Shown here one piece after another: positions 4,701-59,779 of a DNA stretch of 64,000 bases. Below the pieces are notes generated by a model. It ran no database searches, had not been told where the DNA came from, and worked only from the letters and a program-made list of their open reading frames with translations. The stretch comes from Zygnema circumcarinatum SAG 698-1b (lineage: Eukaryota; Plantae; Zygnematophyceae), in assembly GCA_037447605.1 (NCBI GenBank), contig CM074804.1:992001-1056000 (forward strand), written 5' to 3'. Made by a program: the position numbers and the translations under genes. The number at the start of each line of letters is the position of its first letter. Within the stretch, counting starts at the first letter, position 1.

Positions 4701-7700
4701 GAGATTCTGCTGTAGGGTCGAATTCCCTTTGCGTCTGCACTCGAACATCTCCTTCAACTGCACCGGTAGCATCAGCAACAAGCTCCCCTTCGCCTTCAAT
4801 CTTACTGCCCGTCTTACTGCGCTTGTTCTTCCTTGGCCGTGAGGGAAGACCTGTTCCAGGCCCGTCTTGCTTTCTGCTCTTATACTTCCGAGAATGAGGT
4901 GCCGATGTCGCAGATGTGTCAATATCAGTTTCAGGACCTCCTATAACAGATATCTGATGAGTAGGTTTGGCGGTTTCTAAGCCAATAGCAGCCCCTATTG
5001 CTCTGCCATTCATCCTTTCCTCTGCAGAGCTCGTGCCTAACGCCATCAGAGGACCTCCTTTCTCCACAACACTGCTACCCCCCTTCTTCTCCTTCTGTTT
5101 TCCTGCATCCTTCTTTTGCTCTGATTCAGCGCCCTTTCTGAATTCTCCTTTGAGCTTCTCTGAGTCGGAAAGAGATGAAGGAGGCTTGGGTATGCCCCCT
5201 CCCGGACCCTTGGCAACACCCTGCCTTTTGCCATCTATCCCATTTCCCTCAGCATGTAAGGCCTGGTCTGCTTCACCAGAATTCTCCACTGAGATTGACT
5301 TCTTTTCATTTTGCTCCACTGGCCTATTCACTTCATCAGCGATTGAAGACTCTCCTAAACCAAGAGGGCTCGATTTCCCATTTGGCAACCTCGAATTTTC
5401 TTCTGTTGTAGCAGCTGATTTAGCCGTTTGCATACGAGTCGATTTAGAACCTTGTGCTTCCACAAAAGTAGGAGATTCCCCATCCTCACTCTCATTCTCT
5501 TTTCCCGCTCTGGCCTTCGGCACTTCCTGATTTTTACGGAACTCTCCAGGCACTTGCAAAACCTCGTTTTCTGCGTCCTTTTCATCTTCACATTCAGACT
5601 CCACTTCCCCACTTTCCCGGCTATCTACTTGAAAAGTGTAAGCGTCCCTTGGAGCAGGCCCACCTATACATACTGTCGTCTGTGAGCTTCTATTGACCCC
5701 GGCTGATCCTCCCCCTCCCGAGGAAGCCAATGCTAATCCTAACAATAACCGTTCCTGTAATTTCCCTTCCAATCCTTGTTCCGGGGCGCCAAGTTCAACA
5801 TCTGGAGAACTCGGCGTTTCTCCGCCGGCCTCTTTCTCAGCTTCCTTTCCAACCCTAATTGCCATCTCCATCACGTCCTCCGTTGACCCCAATGAAAGCC
5901 TTCTCCCATCATCGGCCCCCGTAGTCTCCTTGCGCTCCTCAGAACTACTGTTCCACTTGCCTGCTCTCCGTTCTCCAAGACTCAGAAAATTCTTCCCAAA
6001 TTTCACCCCCTCCTCTTTACCTATCTTAACATCTGCTCGTCTTCCTGTCCTACTGTGCTTCTCTTCTCCTTCCCTCCCTAAGCTTCCAAGTAAATCCCTG
6101 ACCTCTACTTTGATGCCCTTAGCATCTTTTTCAGCCGCCGGAGTCACACCCTGATCCTCCAGACTCTCATGTATCTTTCCAGCACTTGAACCGGGCCGCT
6201 CTACCTTCAAATCCACCGGCTCAATCGACTTGAAGTCCACATCATTCTTTACGTCTCCAGAAACTTTAGCCTCGTCCACATCCTCCTCATGCTTCTCCTT
6301 GGTCGAAGGTGCGAAGGGAACATCATCCAATGGTGCAACTCTACGAGGTTGTGCACCAGCGGCCTCCTCCATTCGTTCTTCGGGAATCTGTGTTTCAGAT
6401 AATCCTTTATTGAACCACTGTCCCGCTGCAACAGCAACTCTAGATTTGTCTTCACCACCGAGGTGTTTGCCTTCCTCCTCGTCAAGTAATGGGGACTTCT
6501 CTTTCAAGCCCTCCCTCGAACTTGCTTCCAATACTTCACCACCTGCAGCGATGTCGTTGCTTCCTTCCCCTGCAACGGCTATGTCTGCTTTTTCTTCTCT
6601 CACAGGCACAGAGCCTTGCACTTCTGCTGCTTCCACCAGCAAACTCATCAGGTCTTCTGCAGCCCTTGTCATCTGCTCACCTCCCTCAGATTGGCCACTG
6701 CCTGGAGGCTTCCTTTCATCAGCGGAACTACTCATTGCTTGGTTCTTTCCTCCTTCAGTTCCAGGTTTTGTGCTGGGAACCACCCTCGAGCCACCTCTCT
6801 CTCCCCTTCGCCCCTTTGCAGGTAGGCCAACAACATCCTCTCCGAGCCCACTGCGTGCACCTTTGACAGGCCCTGTCTTGTTCGTGTCTTCCTGAGAGCC
6901 CCTCCCTCCGTCCTCTCCCTTCAAGCCGGACAAGGAACCTTTCAGTGTGTCTGATAACCGTCTTTCAAGCAATCTGCCACCATCTATTCCCGGCCCTTGC
7001 GTGCATCCTGTAGCTGCAATGACTGCTAGGATGTCCTTGGTTTTTCCTCTCCCACCCTCCCAATCATCACCTCTGCTTGCAGTGACGGGTCGACCGATGC
7101 GTCCTGGTGATCCTCGCACATCTTTGCATCCCTCCGGATGCCTTCCCTTGTCTGCCTCTCCCGTGCTTTGTGATCTCAAAGGGCTCCTTCCCCCCAGTGG
7201 TATCCTGACAACCAGTCTACCAATAGGCACGGAAGAACTCTCCCCTCCCTGCTGCGCTTCACCTCCAGCTTTCTCAGACGTCCCTAATGGTCCGTCCAAG
7301 CTCCCCTCCTTTCCGCCTGCACTAGACTTAACACTTGCAGCAACCCCCCTCAGCTCTCGTCCAGTAGGTCCAGCCACTTGTGTTGCTCGAGCTACGCCAT
7401 CTTTGTTGCTCTTTGTTCCTTGAGACTGTACAGACCCTCCCTTCGGCCCAGCACTCCCTGAACTCCCTTCTCGGACATTTTCTGTATTTCCACTCCCATT
7501 CCCTAACTTTGCCAAACTGATAGTCTTGGGCTGCACATTTTCTTTGGGCAATTCTTCCTCCTTCTCCTCATGCCTTTCTTCAGGATGGGAGACAGAATCA
7601 TCGCCATCGCCCCTCCCGCTTGGATGACCTTCAGTTGTCAGCTCTCTGGCATGCTGCACTTCTGTAATCAATTCTCTTGCCTTCGCAATTGCACCTTCCT

Positions 7701-9045
7701 TAGGAGCAGGTGGTAAGAGCCCGACCCCTTGCCTCCGCAGCTTTACATGTTCAGAAACTTTTAGACCTTGGCCCTTATCACCCGCTCCTTCCCTCTCACT
7801 TCCCGACCCTTTCACAATTATAGCGCTATCACTCTCGCCGACCCCTGAAACCGTTGAAGTTATCTTATCTGTCAGACTGCACTCCCCTTCCTCAGGAGCT
7901 TCTTCCCCTCCCTGCTTCACAATGGCTGCCTCACCTGCCCCACTCACTGGCCCTGCAACACTAATTGAGGGAGAATCACCTCCTCGGATGTCGTTGCTCT
8001 GCCCTACGTTGGCGTCAGCATTGCTACTTCTACACTCCACGACTTTGCCCGAAACATCACCGTGGTTCCCGAGAACTGCCTTATTTAATTCATTGCTCTT
8101 TTGCTCCCCAGCTGCGCTTTTGCCCTCAACTTTGCCTGCATCTTCTTCCTGCATTGCCCCGTTTCTACTCTTACTTGTGCTGGGGCTGACAGTCATACCT
8201 GTTGCAGGAGTCGCCAATGGACGCCCTCCTGGAAGGGAACCCTCAGGCATAGTGCCTATGTCAGCTGCTTTGCTCCCATTGACTCCTGCTCCCTGCTTCT
8301 GGCTAAGCGCCTGTCCCATTCCAGCTCTCACAACTATGCCACCCTCCGTAGAGGGCACACTACTTCCTGAGCTCTCGATAACTTTTTCTCCTCCCTTCTC
8401 CTCAGCAAGTGTTTCGTCGACTCGTTTCTTCCAAATTTCAACTAGACGACGGGACTTTTTCTGAATCTCCAAATTCCTGTGGCTTCGTAACTGATTTACA
8501 GACTTGCCTATACAACACGACTTCAATGCCTCCAGCCCAACTGGCAGGCGGTCCAAGGCGCGCAGAAGCATGCACAGCAGATCCTCCACCAGGGATGAAT
8601 CACAGTCAGTAGCCCCTCCAGACCCTTCCCCTCCATTACCTCCCTTGCGCTTATGCGCCTCCTGCAACCATTCGTCAAGAAGTCGAAGCCCCCCTTTCTG
8701 CAGAAATTTCTCCAATATGCTCTGCTCCTCTGTCGCCGCCAACAGCGACACTAGGGCCCCTCGTCTCCAGGCTAACTCTGAAAATGTTTTGCTGCCATCA
8801 CTCTGCATTTCTCTCATTAAGTCAACAAGGCCTCCAACAGCATCTGGTCCTGTCAACCCTAACTCTGAACTTCCTAGTGCGGCGGCATCATCCGGTAAGG
8901 GAGCGAACCTCTCCGACAGTGCTTTAGACGCTTCCCCAGAGCTCCCTCCCTCCTGCTCGCTCCTCTCCCTCTTCCTCCCTCTCCCTGCCGCACTCCCTCC
9001 TCCCGAGCCCTGCGAATCCTCTGCTATCGCATGCTTACTCGCCAT
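1720..9045 (-). CDS. SUO-like TFIIS N-terminal (Med26/TFIIS-N) domain protein, single exon, 2441 aa, no BAH domain
   Basis: Uninterrupted ORF. N-terminal TFIIS-N-type segment LEKFLQKGGLRLLDEWLQEAHK...LLRALDRLPVGLEALKSCCIGKSVNQLRSHRNLEIQKKSRRLVEIWKKRVD. C-terminal motifs typical of plant SUO-like proteins: GWRGPALTSAFR, repeated (D/E)LDLN/FDLN, and KRKEAEGG. Family recognised from memory. Confidence 0.85.
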   Translation of the reverse strand: MASKHAIAEDSQGSGGGSAAGRGRKRERSEQEGGSSGEASKALSERFAPLPDDAAALGSSELGLTGPDAVGGLVDLMREMQSDGSKTFSELAWRRGALVSLLAATEEQSILEKFLQKGGLRLLDEWLQEAHKRKGGNGGEGSGGATDCDSSLVEDLLCMLLRALDRLPVGLEALKSCCIGKSVNQLRSHRNLEIQKKSRRLVEIWKKRVDETLAEEKGGEKVIESSGSSVPSTEGGIVVRAGMGQALSQKQGAGVNGSKAADIGTMPEGSLPGGRPLATPATGMTVSPSTSKSRNGAMQEEDAGKVEGKSAAGEQKSNELNKAVLGNHGDVSGKVVECRSSNADANVGQSNDIRGGDSPSISVAGPVSGAGEAAIVKQGGEEAPEEGECSLTDKITSTVSGVGESDSAIIVKGSGSEREGAGDKGQGLKVSEHVKLRRQGVGLLPPAPKEGAIAKARELITEVQHARELTTEGHPSGRGDGDDSVSHPEERHEEKEEELPKENVQPKTISLAKLGNGSGNTENVREGSSGSAGPKGGSVQSQGTKSNKDGVARATQVAGPTGRELRGVAASVKSSAGGKEGSLDGPLGTSEKAGGEAQQGGESSSVPIGRLVVRIPLGGRSPLRSQSTGEADKGRHPEGCKDVRGSPGRIGRPVTASRGDDWEGGRGKTKDILAVIAATGCTQGPGIDGGRLLERRLSDTLKGSLSGLKGEDGGRGSQEDTNKTGPVKGARSGLGEDVVGLPAKGRRGERGGSRVVPSTKPGTEGGKNQAMSSSADERKPPGSGQSEGGEQMTRAAEDLMSLLVEAAEVQGSVPVREEKADIAVAGEGSNDIAAGGEVLEASSREGLKEKSPLLDEEEGKHLGGEDKSRVAVAAGQWFNKGLSETQIPEERMEEAAGAQPRRVAPLDDVPFAPSTKEKHEEDVDEAKVSGDVKNDVDFKSIEPVDLKVERPGSSAGKIHESLEDQGVTPAAEKDAKGIKVEVRDLLGSLGREGEEKHSRTGRRADVKIGKEEGVKFGKNFLSLGERRAGKWNSSSEERKETTGADDGRRLSLGSTEDVMEMAIRVGKEAEKEAGGETPSSPDVELGAPEQGLEGKLQERLLLGLALASSGGGGSAGVNRSSQTTVCIGGPAPRDAYTFQVDSRESGEVESECEDEKDAENEVLQVPGEFRKNQEVPKARAGKENESEDGESPTFVEAQGSKSTRMQTAKSAATTEENSRLPNGKSSPLGLGESSIADEVNRPVEQNEKKSISVENSGEADQALHAEGNGIDGKRQGVAKGPGGGIPKPPSSLSDSEKLKGEFRKGAESEQKKDAGKQKEKKGGSSVVEKGGPLMALGTSSAEERMNGRAIGAAIGLETAKPTHQISVIGGPETDIDTSATSAPHSRKYKSRKQDGPGTGLPSRPRKNKRSKTGSKIEGEGELVADATGAVEGDVRVQTQREFDPTAESQVKDSNMALEAVNRGSRGPDLPNMNAEPDEPSKAGSLAGKLFSNDFSVTVKQVAREAAESATAAAAAALVSKKPGEGSEEDRNASLIQPTRSGGQANSGRQISGSKEGAHWVGGPEGDISTLAGHKVKESGHAKFIGLDVKSAVGEMPSLPEVEREAGGGSVSGGDAAISTGGDSIGSRGRGLKSADKGLEISGAVRPRKRKAGKQHKRADDPLTPEHKSDGQHGHSGGAGEHGVRHEKERVSFDLNLGIAEDMTASTVALGQSDNISERNFFGSPEVGYSVGGLGRVFGSSGSNGRKIESGWRGPALTSAFRTPEPLENSTLIGGGAERGGGNLGGQELRASRPALDIDLNFTDVRALEDAGMTLNSLHGPASNLHGGMMHSTYDLTESLAGGMFHRDHSASESSRLDLDLNRMDPNEDAASPRGLGLKGISSMGTTRPPLRGVSSEPMQPPPRLSPSLVGGAYGGWSGGVGSTFSGSGVQIGASPGQNSPSRRGAFPGNNRSSFGKVMRDFDLNDGPTLDDASAPSNLGGSRPTLDLQSSLSQGLVSRLANHGQARPSGQGNSGKEAGGMGLVMNSPQAQAKAVGGALGTNLNANLGSIQGLGVAGGSVPGGGGGLAAPLWLSPSVSAAYGQSSSAFSAAAQAAANTYFAATGGNYPALNADVYRAAAAVAASASAGNFTSHPTNSMPPLASHLPSGYPLPSALSTALASSSFPFASATGFSSQSAAAATFFGNSFPGSYPALASPLSYNSAPHQGPLGATLGGAPTSGPGHYASGGGPFPAGGSSFPASPDLSAMMAMAAAAPASLTNGLGGGGGGSGSNLGIGSRATTPAGLGALTVGGGGSSSSAGGRPELDLNAGPEGPRESHAGRELQEGMAPRDERRVMGVQGLGNSLGGLFGGPVGGPQAAAVLGGALGSGGMMGVPRNLDLGHGGAGGGGSPGGTAWLVEHMRAYKQVSTAGAKRKEAEGGAEIFQGALKHHQPGAGAGTGWR

Positions 9046-33732: not shown

Positions 33733-35964
33733 TGGGGGGGCGGAGGGGATTTGGAGAAAGAAAGGAGAGGGAGAGGGGAAAGAGGGGAAGGGGGGGGGGG
33801 GGTGGGGGGTTAAGGTGGTTGTTGATGCAGGGAAGATACGAGAGGTTGATGATGACATGTCAGGTGCATGTGTGTTATTGCCTGAAGAACGTTATCGGCT
33901 GCTTCGAATGACCAACTTACATCCTAATTAACCAGTTTAATATCATCGCATAAGAAATTTTGGGGCTCTGCAGATCCATTCGGTTCTTCCTCGGCTCTTG
34001 TTCCATGTGAATGATGATTCTGCTCAAGTGAGAGCTGCCTGTAAGGTGTGGAATTGGAATTGGACCCTGATGTTGAGGACTGCTTGAGGGAGCTTGCGTT
34101 AGTTTATTGCATTTTTTCTTCTTTGAACTTCTCCCTCTCACAATCAATTTTTTGTAGCTTTTGAGAATAGCAAAAGGGAGCGCATAATAGAAAAAGAAAT
34201 CGACTGTGAGAGGGAGGAGTTTAAAGAGGAAAGTGACCATACCTGTGACCTGGAGATTAATTGCATATACTCACTAAGTTGCAACGGCACACGCATGTCT
34301 TAACTTGTGATGCGTATGATGCGAGCCAGAGAGAGACAAAGAGCGAGAGAGAGAGAGAGAGAGAGGTGCGGATTGAACGTTGAGATGTGGGAATGCAGAA
34401 TTTCCAAAACGAAAGAAATGAAGTGCAGACAAAGAGAAAAGAAGAGATGTGGGTTGAAAGTACTGGTGAAATGCGATGAAGACACCAAACTCTAATCTCG
34501 AAACCTGAAACCCTAAACCTTATCATTGCTTATCATTGCTGCTCGCCTGCTTCCCTGCAGGGCACTCTTCGCAAGTTGGCACCTCAGCTTCACTCAGAGG
34601 CTCTGGAAGGACTGCTTGAACATCGAGCATTTCACACAGATCGGAGGTGCTGACTACGGCAGATAATGTCTTGAAATCAAAAAGTCTTTGAGGAAATGTG
34701 CAGGAAATGTCAACTCGCGTTTGTCTTACTTAGTCTGGTGTATATGTTTTGCTTGTAAGAGAAAAGGTTTGCCAAATTGCGGTCTGGACTGCACAAATGT
34801 CAACTGATGTTGCATGCTTTTGTTTGAGCTGCATAAGAGACATATATCGTTGGAGCACCTGTTTTAGCCTTCATAGTATGTCGAACTTGTTTGGATATTG
34901 CTTAACTGTGGCAAAAGGTGTGACCTGGTTTTGCAGGCTGAAATATAATGAGTTTGTAAGGGATTTTGTCTGCCATCTTGCGGCTCAGTTCGAGAAACAG
35001 ACAGGAGTGTACTTGAGCTCAGCTTTAGAGGTGGGATTCCATGTGAAATTATCGTTGGTCGCTTCTTTTGTGTATCGTTTGGGTTTTTAGAGTACATGGA
35101 GGCAATGGAAAGCAAAGCTTTGTTCACCGGTGTAGACGCTGCTTGGCACTGACAAATGATGTTTATTGAAATGAATCGCAGAGTTTAGAGAGTCCATGGC
35201 CCGCCATTCAAGCAAATGCAGCTTTCTTCATTGGCTGCTTCCTTTCTCGCGTGGAGGACGCCGACTTTTTGCAGCAATACATTCCCCAGGTACCCTATGC
35301 AGAAGCTTCAAGCCCTTTTTGTTAGATGTGCAACAGCAAAGCTTGAAATGGACGAGCTTCCTTTATTGCATGGGGGCGGGAGGGAGAGGGAGGAAGAAGG
35401 GGAATGGGAGAGTTCAAAAGAGGCGAGATACCCTACTTCCTCGCTTTTCCCTCCCACTCCTCTCTCTTTCTTTGTTTTTCTCCTTCCCCTTTTATCGCCC
35501 AAAGTCTATAGTATTGTGTACGTTTTATGATCGTGTGTGCTTCCCTCTCTTTCCCCTACCTATCCCCTCGCCCTCCCTCCCTCTCTCCCTCCCTTCCTTC
35601 CCTCCCCTCCCCTCCCCTCCCCTCCCCTGCCCCTCCCCCTCCCCCCTCCCTCCTCCCCCCTCCCCCTCCCCGCCCTCTACCCCTTCCTCCTCCCTTCNNN
35701 NNNNNNNCCCGCCCTCTACCCCTTCCTCCTCCCTTCTCGCCGCACTTCCGCCCTCCCTTCTCGCCCCACCCCCTCCCTCCCTTTTCCCTTTCCAAACCCT
35801 CTCCCATACCTCCCTTTCTTTCGTCATTGTTGCCTCCCCCACCATCACAGGCAAGCTTCCTCCTGGTCAGAATGGCGACCACCTCTACAAGTGCGGTGGT
35901 GCGGACCAATGCAGCGTCGGCTCTGAGCATGCTTTTGGGGAACATCCCCCCCGCACTCTCTTAG
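13810..35964 (+). CDS. SGR6: Large HEAT-repeat protein of the SHOOT GRAVITROPISM 6 / Maestro-like (MROH1) family, ~50 coding exons; true start codon not located (upstream of 13810)
   Basis: About 50 GT-AG exons traced in phase, e.g. [26 protein letters not shown] (13810), [16 protein letters not shown] (~16170), GPPLVDFQ (~18200), [18 protein letters not shown] (~21910), [26 protein letters not shown] (~25400), [11 protein letters not shown] (~31570), [15 protein letters not shown] (~35190), [13 protein letters not shown] with stop at 35962-35964. These are colinear with remembered Arabidopsis SGR6 segments. Confidence 0.9.
33651..33728. repeat. (AG)n microsatellite, ~39 units, intronic
   Basis: Read directly. 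Shorter imperfect GA tracts occur at ~32420-32462 and ~34328-34362. Confidence 0.97.
35560..35790. repeat. C/T low-complexity tract containing a 10-N assembly gap (35698-35707)
   Basis: CCCT/CCTC runs. The same ~29-mer CCCGCCCTCTACCCCTTCCTCCTCCCTTC flanks both sides of the Ns. Confidence 0.95.
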
Positions 35965-37118: not shown

Positions 37119-38605
37119 CTAGTGGCCGGAAATCACCTGTAATGAATCCAACGAACACCAAAGCATCATGCTTGGGTGAGTTAGGCAAGATACTAGACCC
37201 AAGTGAAGAAAAAAAAAATTCCTTAAGTTAGGCAAGTACACGCACAGTGATAATCTTCGAAATCATAAGAAAAAGCAACAAAAGCGTTCAAATATGTCTA
37301 CTTCCTTCTTCAAAAAAGTAGATACACGTTCTAAAGGTGGGAATCCCTTACTTGGCGTATAAAGGTGAAGCGAACCCTTGGAAAGAGCTTCTGTAATTCT
37401 TCAATCTTCTTCACGAGGGCATCATCGCCGTAGACCCCCTGTGTCTCCTCGAAAAGCTCCTCGCGTAATTCGAAGCTGATATGTTGGAGCTCCGGGCTGA
37501 CTTTCAGCCATTCACGTGACATCTGTATGTCGATACTCTCCGCAACTATTGAAAGCGTAAGTTCAACAAGGCGAGGGAAAGACAAAGTATTCTTCAAAGC
37601 CTTACAAATGTTCGCCCAAGGTAGGCACTCCAACATGATCACATGCACCTTTTCCAGAGTTTTCATGCTCCTCAAAAGAAACCTTGAAATAAGATTCTCA
37701 TCAAATAAGGCAAATTCGAATATGGAATTGTGGAGGTTGAACGTATCCATTTCAAATTTGAGGTCACGTATCTCTGCGAGTAGACGAATCTCATCCAGGC
37801 GACCGTTGTTTCCCAATACCAACTCGCCTACACTTCCTCGAAGATTGAGAATTCTCAACCGAGGACATGTAATTCCCAAATGATATAAACTTCCAAAAAC
37901 AACTAACTCTTCCAAGATAGCGTGTTCGACCACATATGTAGACCATCCTGGGACCATCTCATTATCGTCGATCAAGCGCAAAAACGTGAGATTGGGAAAC
38001 AAGCAAAGAAAGCACGCAAAAACTCCATCGCCCCTTTGCTTTTTCACATCGACATGAAGCGTCTTCACACTTTCAAAAACTCTGCAACCGGCTATATCCG
38101 AATCAAGTTCAACCGTGGCCATTAGGCTTTCAAGAAGAGGTAAGTTGGCAAGCGCTTGGAAATGCTTCCAATTGAGACCTTCGTGTGTCTGGATAGACAA
38201 ATCTCGAAGAGTAGTCCCAATGACAGTCGACCAAGACGATATCATCGAAGGGACAACGTGAAAACGAGGCTCGTTACAGTCAGAGCAATCGTCGCGATTA
38301 AAAACAGTAAGGGACTCCACCTTAGGCGTTATACGCACGAGTTTTCCAATTTCAAGCATTTGAGCTTCCTCTCCATGGACCTTTTCTATGATGGTAGTCA
38401 CCGTTCTGCCTCCAATAATTGCTTCCGTGAATGCCTGCACCGCTTCTTGAAAGGCCTTGCAAACAGTTGACAGCTGCAAAGCGCTCTTCATAAAATCACG
38501 GCGGATGACAGCCCCGAGGAGAATCTGCACCAAGAGGAACATCGGAAGGCCCAGGATTGAGCCGCCATCGCAAGTGTCACTTTCTCGTTGGCTACTCGAG
38601 TCCAT
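37119..38605 (-). CDS. F-box/LRR-repeat (FBD/RNI-like) protein; large exon 38605-37352 plus a probable terminal exon 37136-37119 (VISGH*)
   Basis: N-terminal F-box-like ILGLPMFLLVQILLGAV...LQLSTVCKAF is followed by degenerate LRRs (LPLLESL, FPNLTFLRL, CPRLRILNL, FPRLVELTL). The ATG at 38605 follows a T-rich leader. CAA|GTAAGG donor at 37351; ACAG acceptor at 37137. Confidence 0.75.
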
Positions 38606-40390
38606 GGACGCAAGAAGGACGAAGAAAACGAAGGAAAGAATTTTTTTTAAAAGGAAAGAGAGACAAGCAACGGAATATGAGGAGAAATATGAGAGGAGGA
38701 CAAGGAGGGGGATGAGATGATGGCGATTGGAGGGAGAACCTTCACAGTCGCAACTCAGGAAGAAGAGTGCGCCGACAGGAAGGTTCTGGAAGTATACGGA
38801 CGCCACCGACGCTTGCCGCGTTTGCAATGCTTTCAACGTCACGGCGCAGCATTGGTTCAAATCTCAATTTTACATCGACTTAGAGCCAAAGGGAATTGGC
38901 ACTGAACTCACGATGGCAAGGCCATCAAATGTACATGGACAAAAGAAGCATGGGGAACCACGAGGGACTGGTCGCAAAGGACCTAAAGTCGCTTAGAGTC
39001 ATTCGTTGCCATTCAAGCACCCATTCACGGCGGATATCTCAAACAAGAGATATAGGTATAGATTTGTTTTCGCTGCAACCTGCATGCGCCGCCGGGCAAT
39101 GCGCGCGGCAGGCTGCCCTTGCGCGCGATTCCGTGTTACTGTGCAGAAAGGCGGACACACGTGTCGGTGTACGAGTAGCCGTACAGCCAATTGGGGTTAA
39201 ATAGGGTGAAATAGGGTTTAGAGCTTGGCTTGGATTTACCTTTTTCTGTTTGCTGTGTGCAATCAGCCCATGTGGAGGCTGAGCGGAGGAGGTGAGAGCT
39301 AGAATAGCTCAGGCTTATTTACTGTGATTAGAGAGAGGGATTTAGAGGATAGTGTAAGGTTGAATACTAGACAGATCATTTGTAATCCTCTTACCTTCGT
39401 AATGGAGTTTTAGGCTACAAAGCTTTCTCCAAAAGATTTGTAGTGAATGTTTGATTCCTTTGCATTATCTTCATTCTGAAATGTCTACTATGTATTTATT
39501 TATCGGAAGCCGAATTGGGAAGTGAAGTCGATGCATGCTTACAACGCAAACAGGCAAAAAACCCACTCTCCCTCTCTCCCCCATAGAGTCCAACCAGTAC
39601 TTCTGCTCCCTATGCGAATCTGAAAAAAACTTTACAAACAGTAACCTTACAAGCCACTTCCCATTTCTATGTGTCAAGTCCCAAAAAACTGTATAGTACA
39701 ACACATATAGTTCTTCATATCTCGCCTTTCCAAGAATGGAAAAAGTGTGCCTCTGTCCAATATAGCTATGGCTTACACGAGCCTCCCATAGACACCATCA
39801 AAAAGAAAGCGAACAATGGACACAGGCAGCCCTAAAAGGAGCAGCCGCAGTACAGCAGAGGCTGGTTATCTGCTCTCAGATCCCTATCGCACTAAAGCTA
39901 CACATTATCCTCTTGTCCCTCTCCTGAGGACAAACATCACCCGGAGCCCCTCAGAAGCTCACTCAGCAAGACTCACAGCTTCGTTGTTCTCCTCCTTGCG
40001 AGTACCTTCCTATACTGCATTCACAATAAACATCAATGGCTGATTGAAGGTCTGCCAGACGACTAAAGAATGACTGAGTCAGTGGAGCCTCCTTCTCGCT
40101 TACAAGCTTTCCATATTGGACCCCTGAGGATTCTCCACAGCCACAATCTGAACGAGATACTCCATTCCACTCCTTCCATATAAGGATGCTGTTTGCCCGA
40201 CAAGGCTGTTCTTGGCCAGCCATCTCGGTTTTATCCCCGCATCTGCATTCAAGACTGAGCTCCACCTATTCTTATTCCTAGAGGTTACCTGTCAAGGCGC
40301 AGACAACTTCTTACAAGTTCCAAGATCTGTTGACCTAAATCCCTTTGTGTCCAGCCTTGAGAGTGCTTGTCGAACCTTTTCTTGTTGAAT

Positions 40391-45189: not shown

Positions 45190-46810
45190 TTGCACGTGGT
45201 GGCTCTGTCCAACGTGGCATGCCACGTCGGATTGACGTTTTCCGTCGTGAAGAAAAAACGGTCGATTGGACGAATGGGGGAGAGCCACGTGGCAGGTCGC
45301 GCGCGCAGGTCCAGGTTCTCGACGATCAAAAAAGCCCCACCGCCCAAATCCTCCAATCGGTGCTTGCGCTGCGGATGTCGTAATCTGACGTGACAATCTC
45401 TGATTGGCCTGTTTAGATCGTGTTCATCGTCGCAATGCTCTGTTCTTGAAAAATCGTTCGTACAAGAATGAGCTCGGAACGAATACATTTTTTTTCGTAG
45501 AATAGCAGAGCGAAGCCGTACTGTTTTCGAAACGGATCCCGAAGCGAAAGCGCCTACGACTTTTTGAAGATCGCGAAACGCTGAGTGAGTGCGGTGACCT
45601 CAGGATGACGTATTTTTAGGGCTGGCATGGGTCGTCCCATGCAGGCTCTCCTCTTTTTTCAAGTTTGGTTTCCCGTAGAACGACACAGACTGAAATCTAC
45701 ATGGAACGGGGTAGCTTGGCTAATCGTGCTGTAGTCATAGTCCTTTGACTAAGATTGTGCTGGCCCTAGAGTTGGGGCTTGGTTGGCTGTTACCCCAATA
45801 TTTTCCTCGCTGTGTTTGTGGGGATTTGATGAGCATGTGCAGGAGGAGGATGAGTGTGTGAGGATTTGCAGGGCGTCCGTCTTATTCAATGCGCGCACAG
45901 TATGAACAAATTTTGGCTCATAATGTTGTGCATGACGCGATTGCTACGGTGGCACAAAAGGCCGGATTGACGCAAGCCGAGCCGCATTGTACCCCCTCGA
46001 TCCTCGCTACTTTTTATCGACAGCGCATTTTTGTACCCAAGTTTTTCTCTTTTAGTCCTGTGCGCCCAGTTCCTCGTGGTTTCCCATGCCGATGTCGTCC
46101 TTGTCCACTTGATGGCCTCATCCCCATGCGCGAATGCACCATCCTTCATCCATCACGCGCGCATGCATCTTGCCATTCCCGCACTCGCCCGTTACGTCAC
46201 CACATCCCCCTCCCCCCGCGCCCGACAAGCCCTCCCCGCTACGTGGCGGCCCCGCGGCCCCGCCCCCCGCATGCCCCCGTCCCCGCGCACATGGCCCGGC
46301 GGCGCTTTCTCGGCGCTTCCTCCGCCCGCCCGCCGCTCCGCGTTACGATATTTCCCCCGGATCGCTCTCTATGGCGCCGCCGATCTCTTCACGTGGCCTC
46401 GCACGTGCGAGCGGCTGACTCCGCGCGTGCACCCGCGTTCGCTGGCCGTTTCGGATCCCTCTTGCAACGCTTTCAACGGCTCAGATCGCACGATCCGCCA
46501 AACCGCACAGTCGGACGGTGCAGATCTCGTGCCCAACTAACCCCTTTCCTTGTCGGCACATGCTTCCCCCCATCCTGTACGGATACGCTATCCTGTCCGG
46601 CGCACCCACCGCCCGCCACGTGGCGCTGGCCCACCTGACTGCGGATCTTGAAGCGCCCTCTGATTGGCCGCCGGGGGCCGTACGGCCAAATTTGCCGCCC
46701 CGGCTGTCGTCTTGCCCCGCCCGGCCGCCCGCCCTGCCACGTCAGCAGCCGCCCGGGCCCGCGCCTCAAATCCCGTAGCCCGCGGAGAGCCCTCGGGGAT
46801 CACGTCAGCT
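45190..46810. promoter_or_regulatory. Dense ABRE/G-box (ACGT-core) cluster upstream of the TZF gene
   Basis: ACGTGGC at 45212(+), 45221(-), 45284 (palindrome GCCACGTGGC), 46241(+), 46391(+), 46615 (palindrome) and 46736(-). Further CACGTG/TGACGT sites at 45193, 45233, 45386, 45606, 46194, 46402 and 46801. Confidence 0.7.
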
Positions 46811-47018: not shown

Positions 47019-49193
47019 ATGGCTGCGGAACGAGAGAGCAGCGCCGCCATGGCTGCTCTCTACGGAGAGGCCTTCGAGCTCCCATGGGACCTCCGCTCGC
47101 AGTCTCAGCTCAGGCGCCACCACTCTCTCCCTCCCCCTATCTCTACCTCTCCCTCCGATGACTCTTTCTCCCACCCTTCCTCCCTCCCCTACTCTAATTC
47201 TCCCTCTCCCTTCTCCCCACGCCCTCATCGCAGCCCTCCCACCTCCCCCTGCCCCCCTCCCGCCCCCGCTTCCTCCCTCTACCGTCTCAACCTCTCCCTC
47301 GCCGACTCCTTCCCCCCAGAATCCATGGCTTCCCCTCGCATCTCCGACGTCGGTGGCCTCTTCCGCTTCCTCCCCTCCAACAACGAGCCTGACGAAGAGG
47401 ACCTGACTGCCCTCTCTAACGCGCTTCGCCTCGCTGTCGGGGGAGGCTCTCCTGGAGGAGCTGTGGGAGGAGCTGCGGGAGAGCCCGGCTCCCACCCTCA
47501 CATCCAAGACATGTCCGTCTACTCCTCCGACGAGTTTCGAATTTACGAATTCAAGGTCCGCCGCTGCATGCGGGGCCGCAGCCACGACTGGACTGACTGC
47601 CCCTTCGCTCATCCCGGCGAGAAGGCGCGCCGGAGGGACCCCAGGCGCTACCACTACAGTGGGACCGCCTGCCCCGACTTCAGGAAGGGAGCCTGCCGGA
47701 GAGGTGATGCGTGCGAATATGCTCATGGGGTCTTCGAGTGCTGGCTCCACCCCGCCCGCTACCGCACGCAGCCCTGCAAGGACGGAAGGAACTGTAAGCG
47801 GAGGGTCTGTTTTTTCGCTCACAGTAACGAGCAGTTGCGGCTTTTGCCTGCAGCCGCGGCGGCGCAGAGCTTGGCAGCGCAAGGAGGGGCAGGGGGAGGG
47901 GGAGGACACGTGGCGCAGTGTGGAGGCACGGGGTTGTCGCCCACGTCAACGCTTGCGGCTCCGAACCCGAACGACACTTCTCCCGGGTGCTCGCCTCCCG
48001 CCACGCCGAAAGAATCTCCGCCGGGGTCTCCTCCTCTGCATGAGCGAGCTATGGGGGGAGGGGCAGCTTCTGGAGTGTGGGGAGGAGCGGCTATGGCGGC
48101 GGCAGGACCAGCACCGCAGTCTCTCTCTTCTCCGCGGTTCTTTATGGGGGTTCCTTCTCCGAGGGGAGGGGGGTGGGGATTAGGAGGGTCTGCCCTTCCT
48201 CCTCATCCGAGCAACAGCTTTGTGAATGGGTCTCCGCTCTCTCCCGGAGGTGTGGGAGGGAGCCAGGGGGGTATGGCTCAGGGCCAACTTTTGAGGAGCT
48301 TGAATGGAGCACCAGTTGGGGTTGTAGGCGCTGCTGCGAGCGCGGCTATAAGGCAAAGACAGCTCGAGCGCTTCCACTCTCTTCCAGCACTCGCTATTCC
48401 CGGAGGAGTGGATGGAGGGTCTCTCTCGCTCTCCTCTCCCTATGCAGCGCCTTCTCCCTCCCACCATCGCTTGGCCCTCATGCAAGCAGCTGCAGCTGCT
48501 GTGGCTGCAAGCGCTGGCTGCGGCTCACCTGGAGGATATCCTTGTCCAAGCTCTCCCAATGTGTTCCCTTCCTCTCCCTCTGTTTCCGAGCAGCATCAGG
48601 GAAGCCGAGCGGCGATGATGTCGGATCTTGTGGCGAATCTGCAGGCTCTGGAAGTGCAGCCGGGGGGCCCAAAGCCATGGCAGAACCAAGCGCAAGTTCA
48701 GATGGAGATGGAGGCCCAAGTTCGGGCGCAGATCCTGCAAGCTCAAGCTGTACGAGCACAGTGGCAGGCACAGCAGAGGGAGCAGATGAGAGAGGATTTG
48801 GAAGCGCAGGTGAAGGCGCAGGTTTCTATGCAGCAACAGCAGCAGCAGTTGATGGCGGCGGCGGCGAGTCTTCGGCAACGGAGCGGCGGTTCCATGTGCG
48901 AGGCTGTGGGGAGTAAAGCCTCGGAGCAAGCAGGAGCGGCAGGAGGAGGGGGAAATGGAAGTGAAGGAGATGGAGGGATAGGCAGAGGAAGGGAGTTCAC
49001 AAACGACGCCTTCTTCGAAAGCGCGGATTTTGGAGTGGGCGGGGAAGGGAAGGAGAGTGACCTTTCTTGGGTGAGCGATTTGGTGAAAGATGAGTCCGTA
49101 GGTGCGGGGCCGTACAGCCGCACGTCGGGATCGAGCCGAGCTTCAAATCCGTGGGCAGATGTGGGGCATTGGGTCCCTACAGCGAACGCATAG
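47019..49193 (+). CDS. TZF: Arginine-rich tandem CCCH zinc-finger protein (RR-TZF, non-ankyrin type), single exon, 724 aa
   Basis: [101 protein letters not shown] is the canonical RR-TZF motif. C-terminal [10 protein letters not shown]. The ORF-track start at 46824 is a TTG; the first ATG, in good context (accATGg), is at 47019. Confidence 0.95.
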
Positions 49194-50077
49194 AGACAGG
49201 AGCACAAAGAGAGAGAGAAAGAGAGAGCGAGAGAGTGAGAGGAGTGTTCTCTGCGAGATAGGAGGGAGGTGAGGAGGAGACGGTAGGAGCAGCGTATGGT
49301 GGACAACAAACAGAGGAATGGGGCGCGGTTCCAACTGTTTGTCCATTTTTTCCCCATTCTTTCCAGATTTAAACTACGTCAGCGGCCGACCGCCTCTTGG
49401 CAGCATTCGTCGACTTTAGGGCAATTCGTGTAAATTCTTCGCTACCACGGGCAACGGCGTTACCCTTTGTTTGTTGTGTTTTGGTGTCGTTTTTTTTCAT
49501 CCTTTTTTTTTTCCGTTTCTATATAGGGGTTAGGCCATTGCCAGATACCAAATTTTGTCAAAGGGAGCGGGCTTAATTTCTTAGCACTTTGCAAACCAGC
49601 AAGGTACAATTTGTTGCTCTAAGGAGAAAGGGAAGAGGGAAGGGGAGGGCGAGTCCGCAGCGTCTGAAGGTCATTGAGGAGGTTAACTTTGTATGATAGT
49701 GAAGGAGTGATATGCCGAGGTGGGGGTTGAGGCTCCCGCCATGTTCTCGTTCTCGCTTAGCAGCAGGACCTTTAGCGTTTCAGTGGCAGCCATTGCTAAG
49801 TCACACATTCCATTTTAGGAGGCTCGCAGTCTTCTCAGGATCTCTGTCTCGCGTTCAGAATTTGTTGGGGGGATTTTGGGGATGCAAATGAAACCAAAAA
49901 CAAACTTTGCTGTTTTCTTTGGCACGCTTCAGAATGGGAAATTGAGATTTTAGTGAACCTAGGAGGATGGGAATGATGATGGCGATGCCTATGGAGCCTT
50001 GTCTGCATGGTTGGCCTTCTTGCATTTGTGTGAGTGAGGCGAAAAAAAAAAGGAAAAAAAATAACAAAAATGATAAG

Positions 50078-51218
50078 AAGTTTGAACTCGCTATTATTTT
50101 TGACTTGTTCGATGGAGTGTCGTCAGTTGCACCCAAATGCGGAGCTTATCACATGTGAAATGGTGACATTTGGCTCAGTTAGAATTCCCATTCTCTCTCA
50201 TTTTAACTTCTATTTAAAAAAATAATAAAAAATGGAAAAAGTCGACCGAGATGAACTTTGTTATGTGTCTTGGAGCACTCCGAGGGTACTTCACTGTCTC
50301 ACTATAGAACGCAACTTCTTTATTCTTTTCTCGCCGTTACTTTTTTCTCTTATCGAATCTCCATCCTCGTGCAGTGCCACTGTCAAGCTCTTCTGCGCCT
50401 CCTGCGATTGAAACGAACTCGCCATATGGTCCTGCGATTGAAACGAACTCGCCATATGGTCCTGAAGGCTTCACATAGGGTCATTTCAAGCCACGGTGAT
50501 TCGACTATCCGCATCATACATTGGTCGGAAGAAAGATTAGCATCAGCCTTTATCTCCTAATTAAGTATGATGTTTGCAGTTTCCAATTCAACTTTTTGGA
50601 GAGTGGTTCATGAGATGCCCATGTGTAACTAAGCCAGCACAGCCTAAAGAGGTAGCCGCTCACGCTCAGTCCATTAGAGCACATGCAAGCTACATCCACA
50701 CATCCATGTATCCAAATATCCATGTATCCACCCATCCATCCGTTCTATGCACCATCCAATCACCCATCCCATCTAATCTTTCTTTTGACCGAGGTATGAT
50801 GCGGATAGTCGAATCACCGTGGCTTGAAATGACCCTATTTGAAGCCTTTAGGAACATATGGCGAGTTCGTTTCAATCGCAAGAAAGCTTGACACTGGCAA
50901 GGATGGAGATTCGATAAGAGAAAAAACAATGTAACAGCGAGAAAAGAATGAAGAAATTGCGTTCTATGGGTGAGACAGTGAAGTACCCTCGGACTACGCC
51001 CAGACACATGACAAAGCTCATGTCGGTATACTTTTTTCATTTTTTATTATTTTTTTAAAGAGACCCTAAAAAGTTTAAATGAGAGAGAATGGGAATACTA
51101 GCTGAGCCAAATGTCACCATTTCACATGTGATAAGCTCCGCATTTGGGTGCAACTGACGAGCCGTCAGTGCGGCACACTCCATCGAACCAGTCGAAAATA
51201 ATGGACGAGTTCAAACTT
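50078..51218. repeat. Large imperfect inverted repeat: arms ~50078-50540 and ~50773-51218, spacer ~230 bp
   Basis: The left arm is the reverse complement of the right arm along its length (e.g. CGTCAGTTGCACCCAAATGCGGAGCTTATCACATGTGAAATGGTGACATTTGGCTCAG; GGTCATTTCAAGCCACGGTGATTCGACTATCCGCATCATAC). The left arm has a 15-bp deletion and a 30-bp tandem duplication (50401-50460). Confidence 0.95.
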
Positions 51219-52551
51219 GTCATTTCATGGTAGGCAAAGGCCAGATTCAGCTCTTCCTCAATGGCCTGTTTCCACATGAATCTGCTGTACTCAGGCCTTT
51301 GCAGAATTCCAGTGCCCCTTAACATTTCCTCCCAATCAAAACTTCTCCCATCTTTCATTAATCTGCCCCTCTCATCCAAGACACCTCCCTCTTGAAGGGC
51401 ACGATAAACGGTCATAGAGGTCTTTACATCCAGCCTCACTATCCGCTCAGAAAAAAACTCGAGGGTAATCGGAACCTCCAAGCACGGCAACTCCGCAGCT
51501 TGAACGTTGCGTTTTCTCAAAATTCCTACAGCAATTTGCACTCTCTCTGCGGTATCTTCATCTTTTGGCATGTGAAGGAAAAGTGTGGGAGGGTAAGCCT
51601 TGCCGGATTTTAAGGGTGTGGAGTAGGCCTTTGTTATACCACTCGCAATCACAACTGCAAGTGCACTGAAATCCACCAAATGAGCAAGAATAGACACGAA
51701 ATAGCCCCCCGACGAGGCCCCGAGTGCAGCAATTGGCAGACCATTCAGACCATTCATGTTGCGCCACGTCTCAATCGCGTCTGATACTTTGCGGACCTCG
51801 TCAGAGCTTTCAGGGGGCCACAAACTCTGCCAGCAGACGGAAGAGCTGCAAAATAATCCTATACAAAACCGCGTTAGCCAGCAGGTAACATGTGATTGTT
51901 AGCAAGCTTTAGCAAGGAACAGGTCAATCTTTTTCAGTTATACAAGCCTAAAGAATGTCTGGCTTTATTTGCTTACCTATAATAATAAATGCTAATTCCC
52001 TTTACAAACAAAAGAAACCTGTCGAATTATCACAACACTCGCTCTGTCCTACTTTCTCCCTTCATACATTGAATTCAAGATCACCTGGAGAGGGCAAGCA
52101 CTGCGTATCCTCGTTGAAGAGCAGCAATGACCAATGCGCGATCCTCAGGAAGTCCAATACATTCAGGACAATTCGCATTCCTGTCCCAAAAATGCGTTGC
52201 CCGGTGTGTGCATCCATGAGCAAAAAAAACAGCTGCTTTAGGGTTGTCCGGAATCTGCCAGACCGCTTCCGCACCCGCTAGGGTCCCCTTAGTGCTATTC
52301 AATATCACACTTTCTTTCCATAAATCGTCAGATGCTCCCTCGTTACCGAGTTTCAGGGAACTATGTCCGCTTCTGGATGCAGGCATCAATAAATCTCCTA
52401 CCTTCGGATTCATAAGATAAAGGAAGCCCGCAAACGGGAGAAGGAGGATGCAAGTTCCAAGGAACAGAAGACGGGTGTAAAGGAGAGACAATGTAGCCGA
52501 CGACTGGCTGCGCACAGCCATGGCGGAACGCCTGCTGGAGCTCCCGGCCAT
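51122..52551 (-). CDS. Uncharacterised type-II membrane alpha/beta-hydrolase-like protein, 2 exons (52551-52085, 51845-51122), 396 aa
   Basis: N-terminal hydrophobic anchor LLFLGTCILLLPFAGFLYLM; AVFFAHGC...CPECIGLPED; nucleophile-elbow-like ALGASSGG; FLHMPKD; C-terminal HEMT. Exons join in phase (AG|C). Confidence 0.8.
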
Positions 52552-57200: not shown

Positions 57201-58571
57201 TCGGTCTAGGTGTTATGGTGAACCCTCCGCAGTTTCGTCAAAGAACAGCCTGAGACTAGTTTATTTTTTTCATGTATTGAAACTCGCCAAGAAAAGTGTT
57301 TCCCTCTGCTCGCAATAAGGAGGGATGGTTTCTTCCAAATGAATACTTTGTTTCAATCGGTAAAGTGATGGGAGGCCTTTGATGTGTCTGTGATGCCGGT
57401 GCCTATGTTGGGGGCATATTGCTGTCATTGCAGATAGATTGGTCAAGTATTTCGAATTATCAAGTCATGGAGAAGATTAGTTATGTTGCAAGATAATAAT
57501 AAAGTGAAATCAACTTCAGGCAGGATTGGAAAGCAGCCGCTTGGATGAGCAAAACCTACACCTATGTGGAAGTTCTAAATTTGAGCGTAGGTTTTCTAAA
57601 TCTTTATAACATTCACTGCCTAAACGCTTTAGTAGCTGACAGGATGATTTGCACGAGGGGCAATTGTAATGGCAGCATGCAACATGTGAACATGTGCAGA
57701 CGAGACAAGCCGTGATTGGCTCCCGTTTATAAGAATATCTGCAATGGAAGAGCAATTGCCAAGCCATAAATTGACGTGTGCCATTTTAAGAAGTGGAGGC
57801 TGTTACATTCAAGGGAATTACCAGCTGCTAGAAATGGGCGAATGGGTGTTGTTGTTGACCGTGTCGGTGGCCTTCCGCCGCTCCCTCCCTCCTGCCCTCC
57901 CTCCCTCCCTCCGCGCGATGTGCCACACATCGGCGACCTTCGCGGCTGAGAGAGGGCTTGAAGCGTTGCGGAGCCTAGGCGTAGCTTTCAGCTTTTTTTC
58001 TTTGTCCTTAGGTTCTTTGCGACCAGTTCCTCGTGGTTCCCCATGATAATTTTGGCCATGTAGATTTCATGGCATCATCGCCATTGTGAGATCAATGCTA
58101 CATCTCTCCCAGAAACAATGAAACAATCGGCAAACAAAACTGCAGAAGACTATCGACATAAAAGAGGTTTAGAACCAACGAATTCGACAAGGACACAAAA
58201 AAGCAATCTAAGGGTCACCACTGGCTCAACATTCGTCCCATAGAATCTTGAAGTTCCATGTCCTTCACAAACGCCAACGCCAGACGGACAGAGCACCGAA
58301 ACAGCAATACACGGCTCCCTTGCTTCTACAGTAACTGTGGGAAAAAAAAAAGCATTCCGTGATAGTAAAGTTGAAGAAAAGTGTACATGGGAGGAATGGC
58401 CTCAGCCTGCTGACGCCAAAGCTTGCGAAGAGCTACATCTTTAGATATACAAGCTATTGTAGCTCACTTATTCCGATAACTCTGAGCAAAGAAAGAGCTC
58501 GAAGAAGTGCTGTTGCTGAGAATACTAAGCATTTTTCAGACGGGTAAAACAAGGATGGGAAACCTAAGTAT

Positions 58572-59411
58572 TTATGAACCTGCAGCTTCAAAAGAAGCAA
58601 TCGCATTCACCCCCTCCAAAAGGTCCTCTGTCTGCTTCTCCAAAAGTTCCTCCAGGTTCTGCATCCGGTGTTCCATAATTTCGAGTTCTTCCATGACAGC
58701 TACTTTTGCAGCTTGCACGAATGCAGAAACTTCAGCATCATAGCTGTGCCTCCTTTTCTTCTTCGCGCTGCCAGGGGTTGTTTCAACGTCTGCTCTATTT
58801 GCAGAGCTTTCAAGCCTGCGCACTGAAAACTCAGGATTGAGATTCGGCTGATCTCCAAGCCACTCTTCTAATGCCAGGAAAACCCTATCGCTGAAGTAGG
58901 AAGGCAAACCATGCTCCTTTCTCTCACGCGGAGTCATATCCCAGTACGCAGGCTTGCCAGGCGGATTCCTGTACTTCACTTTCTTGTAATCTCGCTTCAA
59001 ATTCTCCCACTTTTGTCGGCATCGAGTCTTGTCCTTATCAGTCACGCCTTGCGCTACCATTTCCTCGGCTACAATCGTCCATTTTTCGTCTGCTGAAGCC
59101 GGAGGTCCATTCCATCCTCCCATCTTTTCAACTTGCCTCCTCCTTGACTCCACCAGTACAAGAGTTTCCAGTTCCGTCCATTTTGCCTGTCTGAAGCTCG
59201 TCGCCTCCGCCTGCTTCCAGCCATCATGCTGCTGTATCGGAGTCCACATGCTGCCGCCGAGCGGCGAAATATGGTACTCAGCATGCATCGGACTCATGTC
59301 CTGACCGTCGTCCTTCATGCCTCTCCTCATTTGCAGAAGTGAATGCTGAAAGGGAACTATCATGTTCCCTCCTGTAGGCGAGCCTCCCGGCCATAACTGC
59401 CGTCTCTCCAT
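58572..59411 (-). CDS. Trihelix (Myb/SANT-like, GT-family) transcription factor, ASR3/SH4-like clade likely
   Basis: KWTELETLVLVESRR...KWTIVAEEM...CRQKWENLKRDYKKVK...YWDMTPRERKEHGLPSYF; NLS-like KKKRR; C-terminal coiled-coil. ATG at 59411. A short extra 3' exon is possible via a GCAG|GT donor near 58580. Confidence 0.85.
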   Translation of the reverse strand: MERRQLWPGGSPTGGNMIVPFQHSLLQMRRGMKDDGQDMSPMHAEYHISPLGGSMWTPIQQHDGWKQAEATSFRQAKWTELETLVLVESRRRQVEKMGGWNGPPASADEKWTIVAEEMVAQGVTDKDKTRCRQKWENLKRDYKKVKYRNPPGKPAYWDMTPRERKEHGLPSYFSDRVFLALEEWLGDQPNLNPEFSVRRLESSANRADVETTPGSAKKKRRHSYDAEVSAFVQAAKVAVMEELEIMEHRMQNLEELLEKQTEDLLEGVNAIASFEAAGS

Positions 59412-59779
59412 AGCGCGCGCGCCGCACCGCTGCATTCAACCAATCCGCCATATTAAACTTCACACGATTATTATTCCTCCACTCAACTTCCCTTCCACCT
59501 TCAACCCCCTCCCTTCCAACTCGCTCCTCTCGCCCTTCCCGCTTCCCGCTCCCCCCTCCTGCAACCGCCCTCTTTGCAGCGCCTCAGAAAATCGAACCAT
59601 AAACAGAAAAAGCTGTAGAAGCATGAAGAAGCTGAACTGCGTGCGTACGTTTGTAAGCTTCACGCATTCCCACCGTTCACATGGCCGCCATAGCCATGGC
59701 CGCGTTCCCTCCCGCTCCTTGCCGCTGTCCCCTCCGCCATGAACAGTTCAACTGTCGCCAGCCCTAACGCTCTCTTTAA

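Follow-up and report, generated by a model that had tools for sequence, protein, structure and literature searches.

The repeat described here lies between two convergent genes within a 64-kb stretch of DNA (the window), and the stop codons of the two genes are 1.9 kb apart. The plus-strand neighbor is an open reading frame (ORF) at positions 47019 to 49193 that encodes an AtC3H23-like tandem CCCH zinc-finger (TZF) protein. An AtC3H23-like CCCH finger matches PF25512 at residues 172 to 205 (E value of 4.5e-22; 77.9 bits, against a cut-off of 27), and a second CCCH finger follows at residues 216 to 237 (PF00642; E value of 3.6e-06), which bears out the TZF identity given in the original prediction. 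An (AG)17 microsatellite occupies positions 49208 to 49241, directly 3' of the TZF stop codon. A TGTAA motif is found 236 nt 3' of the same stop codon, and the left arm of the repeat begins 885 nt past it.

The minus-strand gene was delineated by tblastn with the Mesotaenium homolog P0003, which located two coding exons, running from 52551 to about 52086 and from about 51846 to 51122. The first exon (52086 to 52551), which ends at a GT donor, encodes an N-terminal membrane anchor and an HGC motif, and residues 43 to 116 of P0003 align to it at 52308 to 52087 with 68% identity. The second and last exon (51122 to 51846) follows an AG acceptor, encodes the GASSGG nucleophile elbow, and contains the minus-strand ORF at 51122 to 51823; tblastn with P0003, P0001, and P0002 covered it from 51847/51853 to 51131. 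The GT...AG intron between the exons is seen directly in the sequence. The exons were searched one by one and not as a joined protein, and the search with the last exon retrieved about 200 plant and algal homologs of approximately 350 amino acids each, under names as varied as “alpha/beta hydrolase fold,” “peptidase S9...,” and “like AT3G58800.”

Searches of the gene product against Pfam and against PDB sequences gave no match. An AlphaFold2 model of the homolog P0003, built from 40 homologs, has a pLDDT of 84, and its top Foldseek matches are esterases, dienelactone hydrolases, and hormone-sensitive-lipase-type enzymes (E values of 2e-9 and weaker; probability of 1.00). The GASSGG motif, a GxSxG nucleophile elbow, is invariant across the homologs. 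It is through this modeled fold and this motif that the label “hydrolase,” already used in the original prediction, gains its support, and hydrolase is a fair name for the parent gene, with an alpha/beta-hydrolase fold as the predicted architecture. The family is plant-wide and membrane-anchored, with proteins of about 350 amino acids (“like AT3G58800”), and has neither a Pfam model nor a PDB sequence relative. The parent gene and its three closest homologs, P0001, P0002, and P0003 (Mesotaenium), have in common a C-terminal tail of the form WF-x-x-x-C...C-x-x-Y, whereas angiosperm homologs end about 15 residues earlier, without the algal Cys...Cys tail. This algal Cys...Cys-x-x-Y tail is disordered in the P0003 model.

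Three further ORFs were noted on the minus strand of the window. One, at 1720 to 9045, is an uninterrupted ORF of 2,441 amino acids with an N-terminal Med26/TFIIS helical-bundle domain (PF08711; E value of 6e-11), an unusually long single exon for an intron-containing genome. The single-exon ORF at 37331 to 38860 weakly resembles an F-box-associated LRR, with a score under the Pfam cut-off, and that at 58572 to 59435 encodes a Myb/SANT-like DNA-binding domain (PF13837; E value of 4.7e-12), a domain often tied to domesticated transposase-derived genes.

Self-BLAST of the intergenic region against the window returned a single inverted match, of 50078 to 50540 with 51218 to 50773, at an E value of about 1e-125. 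A repeat search of positions 49000 to 52500 recovered the collinear inverted segments I1 to I7, which join into one repeat. Beyond the BLAST limits of 50078 and 51218, 9 of 10 positions match when read by eye, if a 3-nt AAG insertion is allowed, and the outer homology is probably about 10 nt longer than these limits, reaching 50068 and 51228. The left arm (50068 to 50540) and the right arm (50773 to 51228) enclose a single-copy spacer of 232 bp (50541 to 50772), the would-be loop, whose right half contains an ATCCA/CATCC-rich low-complexity stretch at 50692 to 50739. Across the full 64-kb window, self-BLAST showed no second large inverted repeat and no further copy of either arm. Dispersed repeats of 84 to 91 bp with 75 to 82% identity link positions 38899 to 38986 with 58008 to 58098 and positions 46044 to 46127 with 58001 to 58084; these short sequences, which occupy three sites, may belong to a small repeat family that has no relation to the fold-back. 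An exact 27-mer from the best-conserved stretch of the arms had no match among JGI metagenome contigs.

When the reverse-complemented right arm was aligned to the left arm by MAFFT, 386 of the aligned columns matched and 31 did not (92.6% identity), and 7 indel events accounted for 75 columns in all. The left arm has deletions of 15, 8, and 4 bp and two of 1 bp, as well as extra segments of 7 and 39 bp. Most of the 39-bp segment is a perfect 30-bp tandem duplication (50400 to 50464; 2.2 copies, 100% matches, score of 130), which is confined to the left arm; the right arm has one copy. This tandem duplication is a secondary event, younger than the inverted copy.

The right arm, read on the minus strand, contains the last ~32 to 35 codons of the hydrolase gene, its stop codon (51124 to 51122), and about 350 nt of 3' untranslated region (UTR) or downstream DNA, and it runs unbroken into the last hydrolase exon. 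The left arm comprises a pseudo-C-terminus that ends at a stop codon at 50156 to 50158, followed by the copied 3' flank, and its plus strand is the sense strand of the copied tail. The parent gene end reads ...IFDWFDGVCRTDGSSVAPKCGAYHM up to its stop codon. On its plus strand the left arm reads ...FELAIIFDLFDGVSSVAPKCGAYHM where the parent gene reads ...LNSSIIFDWFDGVCRTDGSSVAPKCGAYHM, each followed by a stop codon, and alignment of the left arm to the gene tail leaves ...FELAIIFDLFDGV separated by a five-residue gap from SSVAPKCGAYHM and the stop codon. The 15-bp deletion in the left arm drops the codons for CRTDG, including that for the conserved first Cys. The other lesions of the left arm are a W-to-L change at a nearly invariant Trp and, further up, a frameshift caused by a 1-nt deletion.

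The right arm is taken as ancestral because its C-terminal tail is also present in the algal homologs P0001, P0002, and P0003. Judged from the reading frames, the right arm is the parent and the left arm is a derived, noncoding copy. Upstream of the left arm, tblastn found no further pieces of the hydrolase, so that only the tail of the gene was copied, with ~100 nt of coding sequence and ~350 nt of downstream DNA. The original prediction had described arms of ~450 bp around a spacer of ~230 bp, a right arm formed by the end of the minus-strand hydrolase gene, and a left arm that is a diverged inverted copy with a 15-bp deletion and a 30-bp tandem duplication. All of this was recovered, the first by both the repeat search and self-BLAST with a spacer of 232 nt, the second from the ~32 to 35 codons, stop codon, and ~350 nt downstream of the ORF at 51122 to 51823, and the third from the alignment with its 31 mismatches.

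The differences between the arms have the appearance of unconstrained decay. The 31 substitutions comprise 17 transitions and 14 transversions, and the transitions would give G:U pairs at 11 positions in a plus-strand RNA and at 6 in a minus-strand RNA, a split which indicates that pairing is protected on neither strand. No pairing-preserving bias was detected in the divergence of the arms, a comparison of low power with 31 substitutions and 7 indels. The arms differ at 3 of ~67 aligned coding sites, versus 28 of ~350 noncoding sites, as expected with a parent constrained only in its coding part and a copy constrained nowhere. Mutated CpG columns (7 of 42) are no more frequent than mutated columns among the other C/G positions (22 of 141; Fisher p = 0.81), and the observed/expected CpG ratios of the arms (1.12 and 1.04) exceed those of the window (0.64) and the spacer (0.29). 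Neither the column counts nor these ratios show a footprint of methylation-type CpG decay in the arms, at the low power that 31 substitutions afford. The contrast in CpG ratio between arms and spacer involves small numbers. The left arm thus appears to be drifting as nonfunctional DNA, with a neutral-looking decay.

A short core enclosed by long terminal inverted repeats is reminiscent of fold-back elements, and a fold-back or MITE-type transposon with terminal inverted repeats of ~450 bp, inserted at the end of the hydrolase gene, would have supplied the terminus of that gene. This origin is scarcely credible, as the coding portion of the right arm represents the ancestral C terminus of the family and is present in other algae, no other copies of the arms lie within the 64-kb window, the flanks (...GATAAG and GTCATT...) are unlike and show no target-site duplication, and the spacer contains no ORF that matches a family. 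A transposon was rejected on the conserved coding terminus, the missing target-site duplication, and the single-copy state in the window.

Fold-back chimeras are a known artifact of long reads, and an assembly error derived from one such chimeric read belongs to a recognized class of artifact. That this is the source of the repeat has next to no probability, since 7.4% of aligned sites and 7 indels set the two arms apart, with the tandem duplication in one arm only, and 232 bp of unique DNA separate them. The sole N-run of the window (35698 to 35707) is 14 kb away, and the locus lies in the middle of a large scaffold. The original prediction had likewise held that the divergence between the arms argues against an artifact, and the 7.4% difference, the 7 indels, and the tandem duplication internal to one arm led to the rejection of this explanation. 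A retrocopy was also rejected, on two grounds: the A-rich tract (50041 to 50077) marks the 5' and not the 3' end of the sense copy, and the copy reaches ~350 nt past the stop codon, beyond the likely poly(A) site.

The locus is probably a neutrally drifting relic of a fold-back duplication made during repair or replication, with a hairpin potential that is only latent. Its anatomy consists of an original in situ, a short single-copy spacer, and an inverted copy that starts right at the spacer. This layout of a spacer plus an inverted copy is a signature of fold-back repair (Hermetz et al. 2014, PMC3907307). In yeast, double-strand breaks induce fold-back priming (PMC10622511, PMC11724301). Such an anatomy is the mark of a broken end that primes on itself or of a template switch at a replication fork (PMC3907307, PMC10622511, PMC11724301, and PMC10766183, the last on ODIRA).

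The mechanism proposed for this locus is deduced from its anatomy alone. A break or a stalled fork may have occurred near position 50541, in the gap between the convergent genes and ~580 bp 3' of the hydrolase stop codon. The free 3' end would then have folded onto its own strand ~230 bp away, annealing near 50773, and would have been extended for ~450 nt into the hydrolase tail, to about 51228. Joining of the new end to the TZF-side flank would have left the parental arm, the single-copy spacer, and the inverted copy. Later drift of the copy would have brought substitutions, the frameshift, and deletions and then the 30-bp tandem duplication, while the parental arm stayed in a working gene. 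Junction microhomology amounts to ≤3 nt (AAG, at the outer junction) and is not separable from the copy, and the inner priming site is masked by the 7% divergence. The A-rich stretch at 50032 to 50083 adjoins the outer junction and may mark either the 3' end of the TZF gene or the site at which the break was rejoined.

The position of the poly(A)-type sequences bears on what transcripts of the locus could contain. A poly(A) role of AAUAAA and of A-rich blocks is assumed here from the signal architecture of land plants. The parental A-rich block identified by motif search (51023 to 51062, minus strand) lies 60 to 100 nt past the hydrolase stop codon, is preceded by a U-rich stretch, and contains an AAUAAA whose 5' end is at 51048, 74 nt past the stop. 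By analogy, it would serve the hydrolase mRNA as a near-upstream poly(A) element. The same search located the copied A-rich block at 50210 to 50246, with an AATAAA at 50224 that is in the sense orientation for plus-strand transcripts coming from the TZF gene; the copied signal that the original prediction had placed at 50221 is there, as AATAAT/AATAAA at 50221/50224 in the left arm. Between the two stop codons, the plus strand contains AATAAA only once, at 50224 in the left arm, and on the minus strand the first AATAAA encountered is the one at 51048 in the right arm. By composition, the block of the interval that is richest in A (83% over 30 nt) is at 50032 to 50083 on the plus strand, and the TZF gene may have its own 3' end in this region. 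Such A-rich 30-mers are rare: the 64 kb contain 66 start positions, of which roughly half are at this locus.

Because the copy is an inverted 3' end, the poly(A)-type region of each arm faces a polymerase arriving from outside in the sense orientation. The first arm met on either strand therefore presents a poly(A)-type region. This arrangement of motifs suggests that transcripts end within the first arm, and a hairpin can form only if transcription continues through one or two likely poly(A) regions. The alternative offered in the original prediction, in which the copied signal provides a poly(A) site for the plus strand, agrees with this arrangement no less well than a hairpin locus does.

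The same geometry raises the possibility of a co-opted back-to-back terminator, in which the left arm polyadenylates plus-strand read-through and insulates the convergent genes from antisense transcription. The copy spans from 96 nt before the stop codon to ~350 nt after it, and so includes the U-rich stretch and then the A-rich AATAAA block in the plus orientation. The block is relatively well kept, with 22 identical bases at 50213 to 50234, and its AATAAA at 50224 is the sole one on the plus strand between the two stop codons. Co-option nevertheless appears distinctly unlikely: the stronger A-rich block at 50032 to 50083 just upstream may already end TZF transcripts, the TGTAA motif is already present 236 nt past the TZF stop codon, and constraint on the left arm is not evident beyond what chance would give.

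The original prediction saw in the repeat a candidate hairpin-siRNA/proto-miRNA locus. In that reading, read-through from the TZF gene (plus strand) or from the hydrolase gene (minus strand) would yield a fold-back RNA of ~1.15 kb that is diced into small RNAs, which would lower the hydrolase mRNA and possibly tie it to the induction of TZF. The physical premises of this reading are well founded. As had been predicted for a transcript that covers both arms, the plus-strand RNA of positions 50070 to 51225 folds in silico as a long, imperfect hairpin (-703.8 kcal/mol), in which perfect duplex runs of 59, 45, 27, 26, 24, and 22 bp are left. The predicted match of its small RNAs to the hydrolase mRNA also holds, with 89 of the 443 left-arm 21-mers identical to the parental sense strand. 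Any read-through RNA would, on this predicted fold, be a good Dicer substrate.

A working locus of this kind is nonetheless unlikely. Its arms are gene derived, the predicted fold is extremely stable with long perfect duplex runs, and small RNAs from the plus strand of the right arm would by construction be perfectly complementary to the hydrolase mRNA. Among streptophyte algae, DCL1/AGO1-type machinery is encoded from Klebsormidiophyceae onward, and Zygnematophyceae also encode DCL2/3/4 (PMC7994812); inverted duplication of target genes is moreover an accepted route to plant MIRNA genes (PMC3237417). Against these points, the substitutions have no pairing-preserving bias (14 of 31 are pair-breaking transversions), the 7 indels leave bulges of up to 39 nt, and the arms have no CpG-decay footprint. 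On either strand, the first arm met carries a sense-oriented A-rich AAUAAA block, and a transcript of the TZF gene must run >2 kb past its stop codon to cover both arms.

Database and literature searches added little on this question. Rfam 15, including its MIR families, gave no match at the gathering score in the whole window, and in E-value mode positions 49200 to 51900 gave only two chance-level matches (E values of 2.3 and 4.9), neither of which lies in the arms. Exact-match queries with the TZF ORF and with ten ORFs within or near the arms came back empty. The small-RNA biology of streptophyte algae is almost undescribed (PMC7994812), and a literature search on small RNAs of this group, Closterium included, yielded only a gene-inventory paper.

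On the sequence evidence, a hairpin-siRNA or proto-miRNA function, with silencing driven by TZF, is mildly disfavored. Whichever strand is transcribed, the RNA must extend past an A-rich AAUAAA block before it can contain the hairpin, and the output of hairpin or small RNA, if any, is therefore probably minor and incidental, and not a selected function. A broader form of the idea places this locus in a set of gene-end fold-backs whose read-through transcripts are diced to siRNAs against their parents, a “birth stage” of plant-type MIRNA genes in an alga of the Zygnematophyceae type, the group of algae most closely related to land plants, coupled here to a stress-type TZF neighbor; this is highly doubtful.

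At present the repeat mainly documents that gene ends in this genome undergo small fold-back duplications and that these are retained. An expressed hairpin would represent a gene-derived silencing locus at an early stage, in the algal lineage that is sister to land plants, and a natural example of a convergent gene that controls its neighbor. The geometry itself is general, as a fold-back from the 3' end of a gene sets a sense poly(A) region against transcription from both sides. Since a hairpin RNA from such a structure demands read-through of a terminator, this feature may help in the triage of similar loci.

Several known systems resemble the locus in part. The inverted-duplication model for the origin of plant MIRNA and hairpin-siRNA loci was reportedly introduced by Allen et al. 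in 2004. Drosophila hpRNA genes are a comparable gene-derived hairpin system. The inverted-duplication model of MIRNA genes is available in an updated form (PMC3237417). As in that model, an inverted gene fragment is present, the arms are complementary to each other and to the parent, and the long, imperfect hairpin corresponds to a “young” stage. Unlike the loci of the model, which have two arms apart from the parent, this one uses the 3' end of the parent gene itself as an arm, and its pattern of divergence gives no sign of selection for pairing.

The SRO5/P5CDH pair of Arabidopsis is a cis-natural antisense siRNA locus formed by convergent genes. The present locus shares with it the convergent neighbors, one of them from a stress-associated family, and the potential for double-stranded RNA that covers the partner's 3' end. 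In contrast to SRO5/P5CDH, the double-stranded RNA could here form within one molecule, and the stop codons are 1.9 kb apart.

Fold-back inverted duplications (PMC3907307; Al-Zain et al. 2023, PMC10622511; PMC10766183) share with this locus an original in situ, a short spacer of normal copy number, and, so far as the diverged junctions can be read, little or no homology there. The published cases are kilobases to megabases in size, are recent, and often come with terminal deletions or dicentric chromosomes. The fold-back described here, unlike these, is 0.45 kb long, interstitial, fixed, and already diverged, and its formation would need a second, end-joining step.
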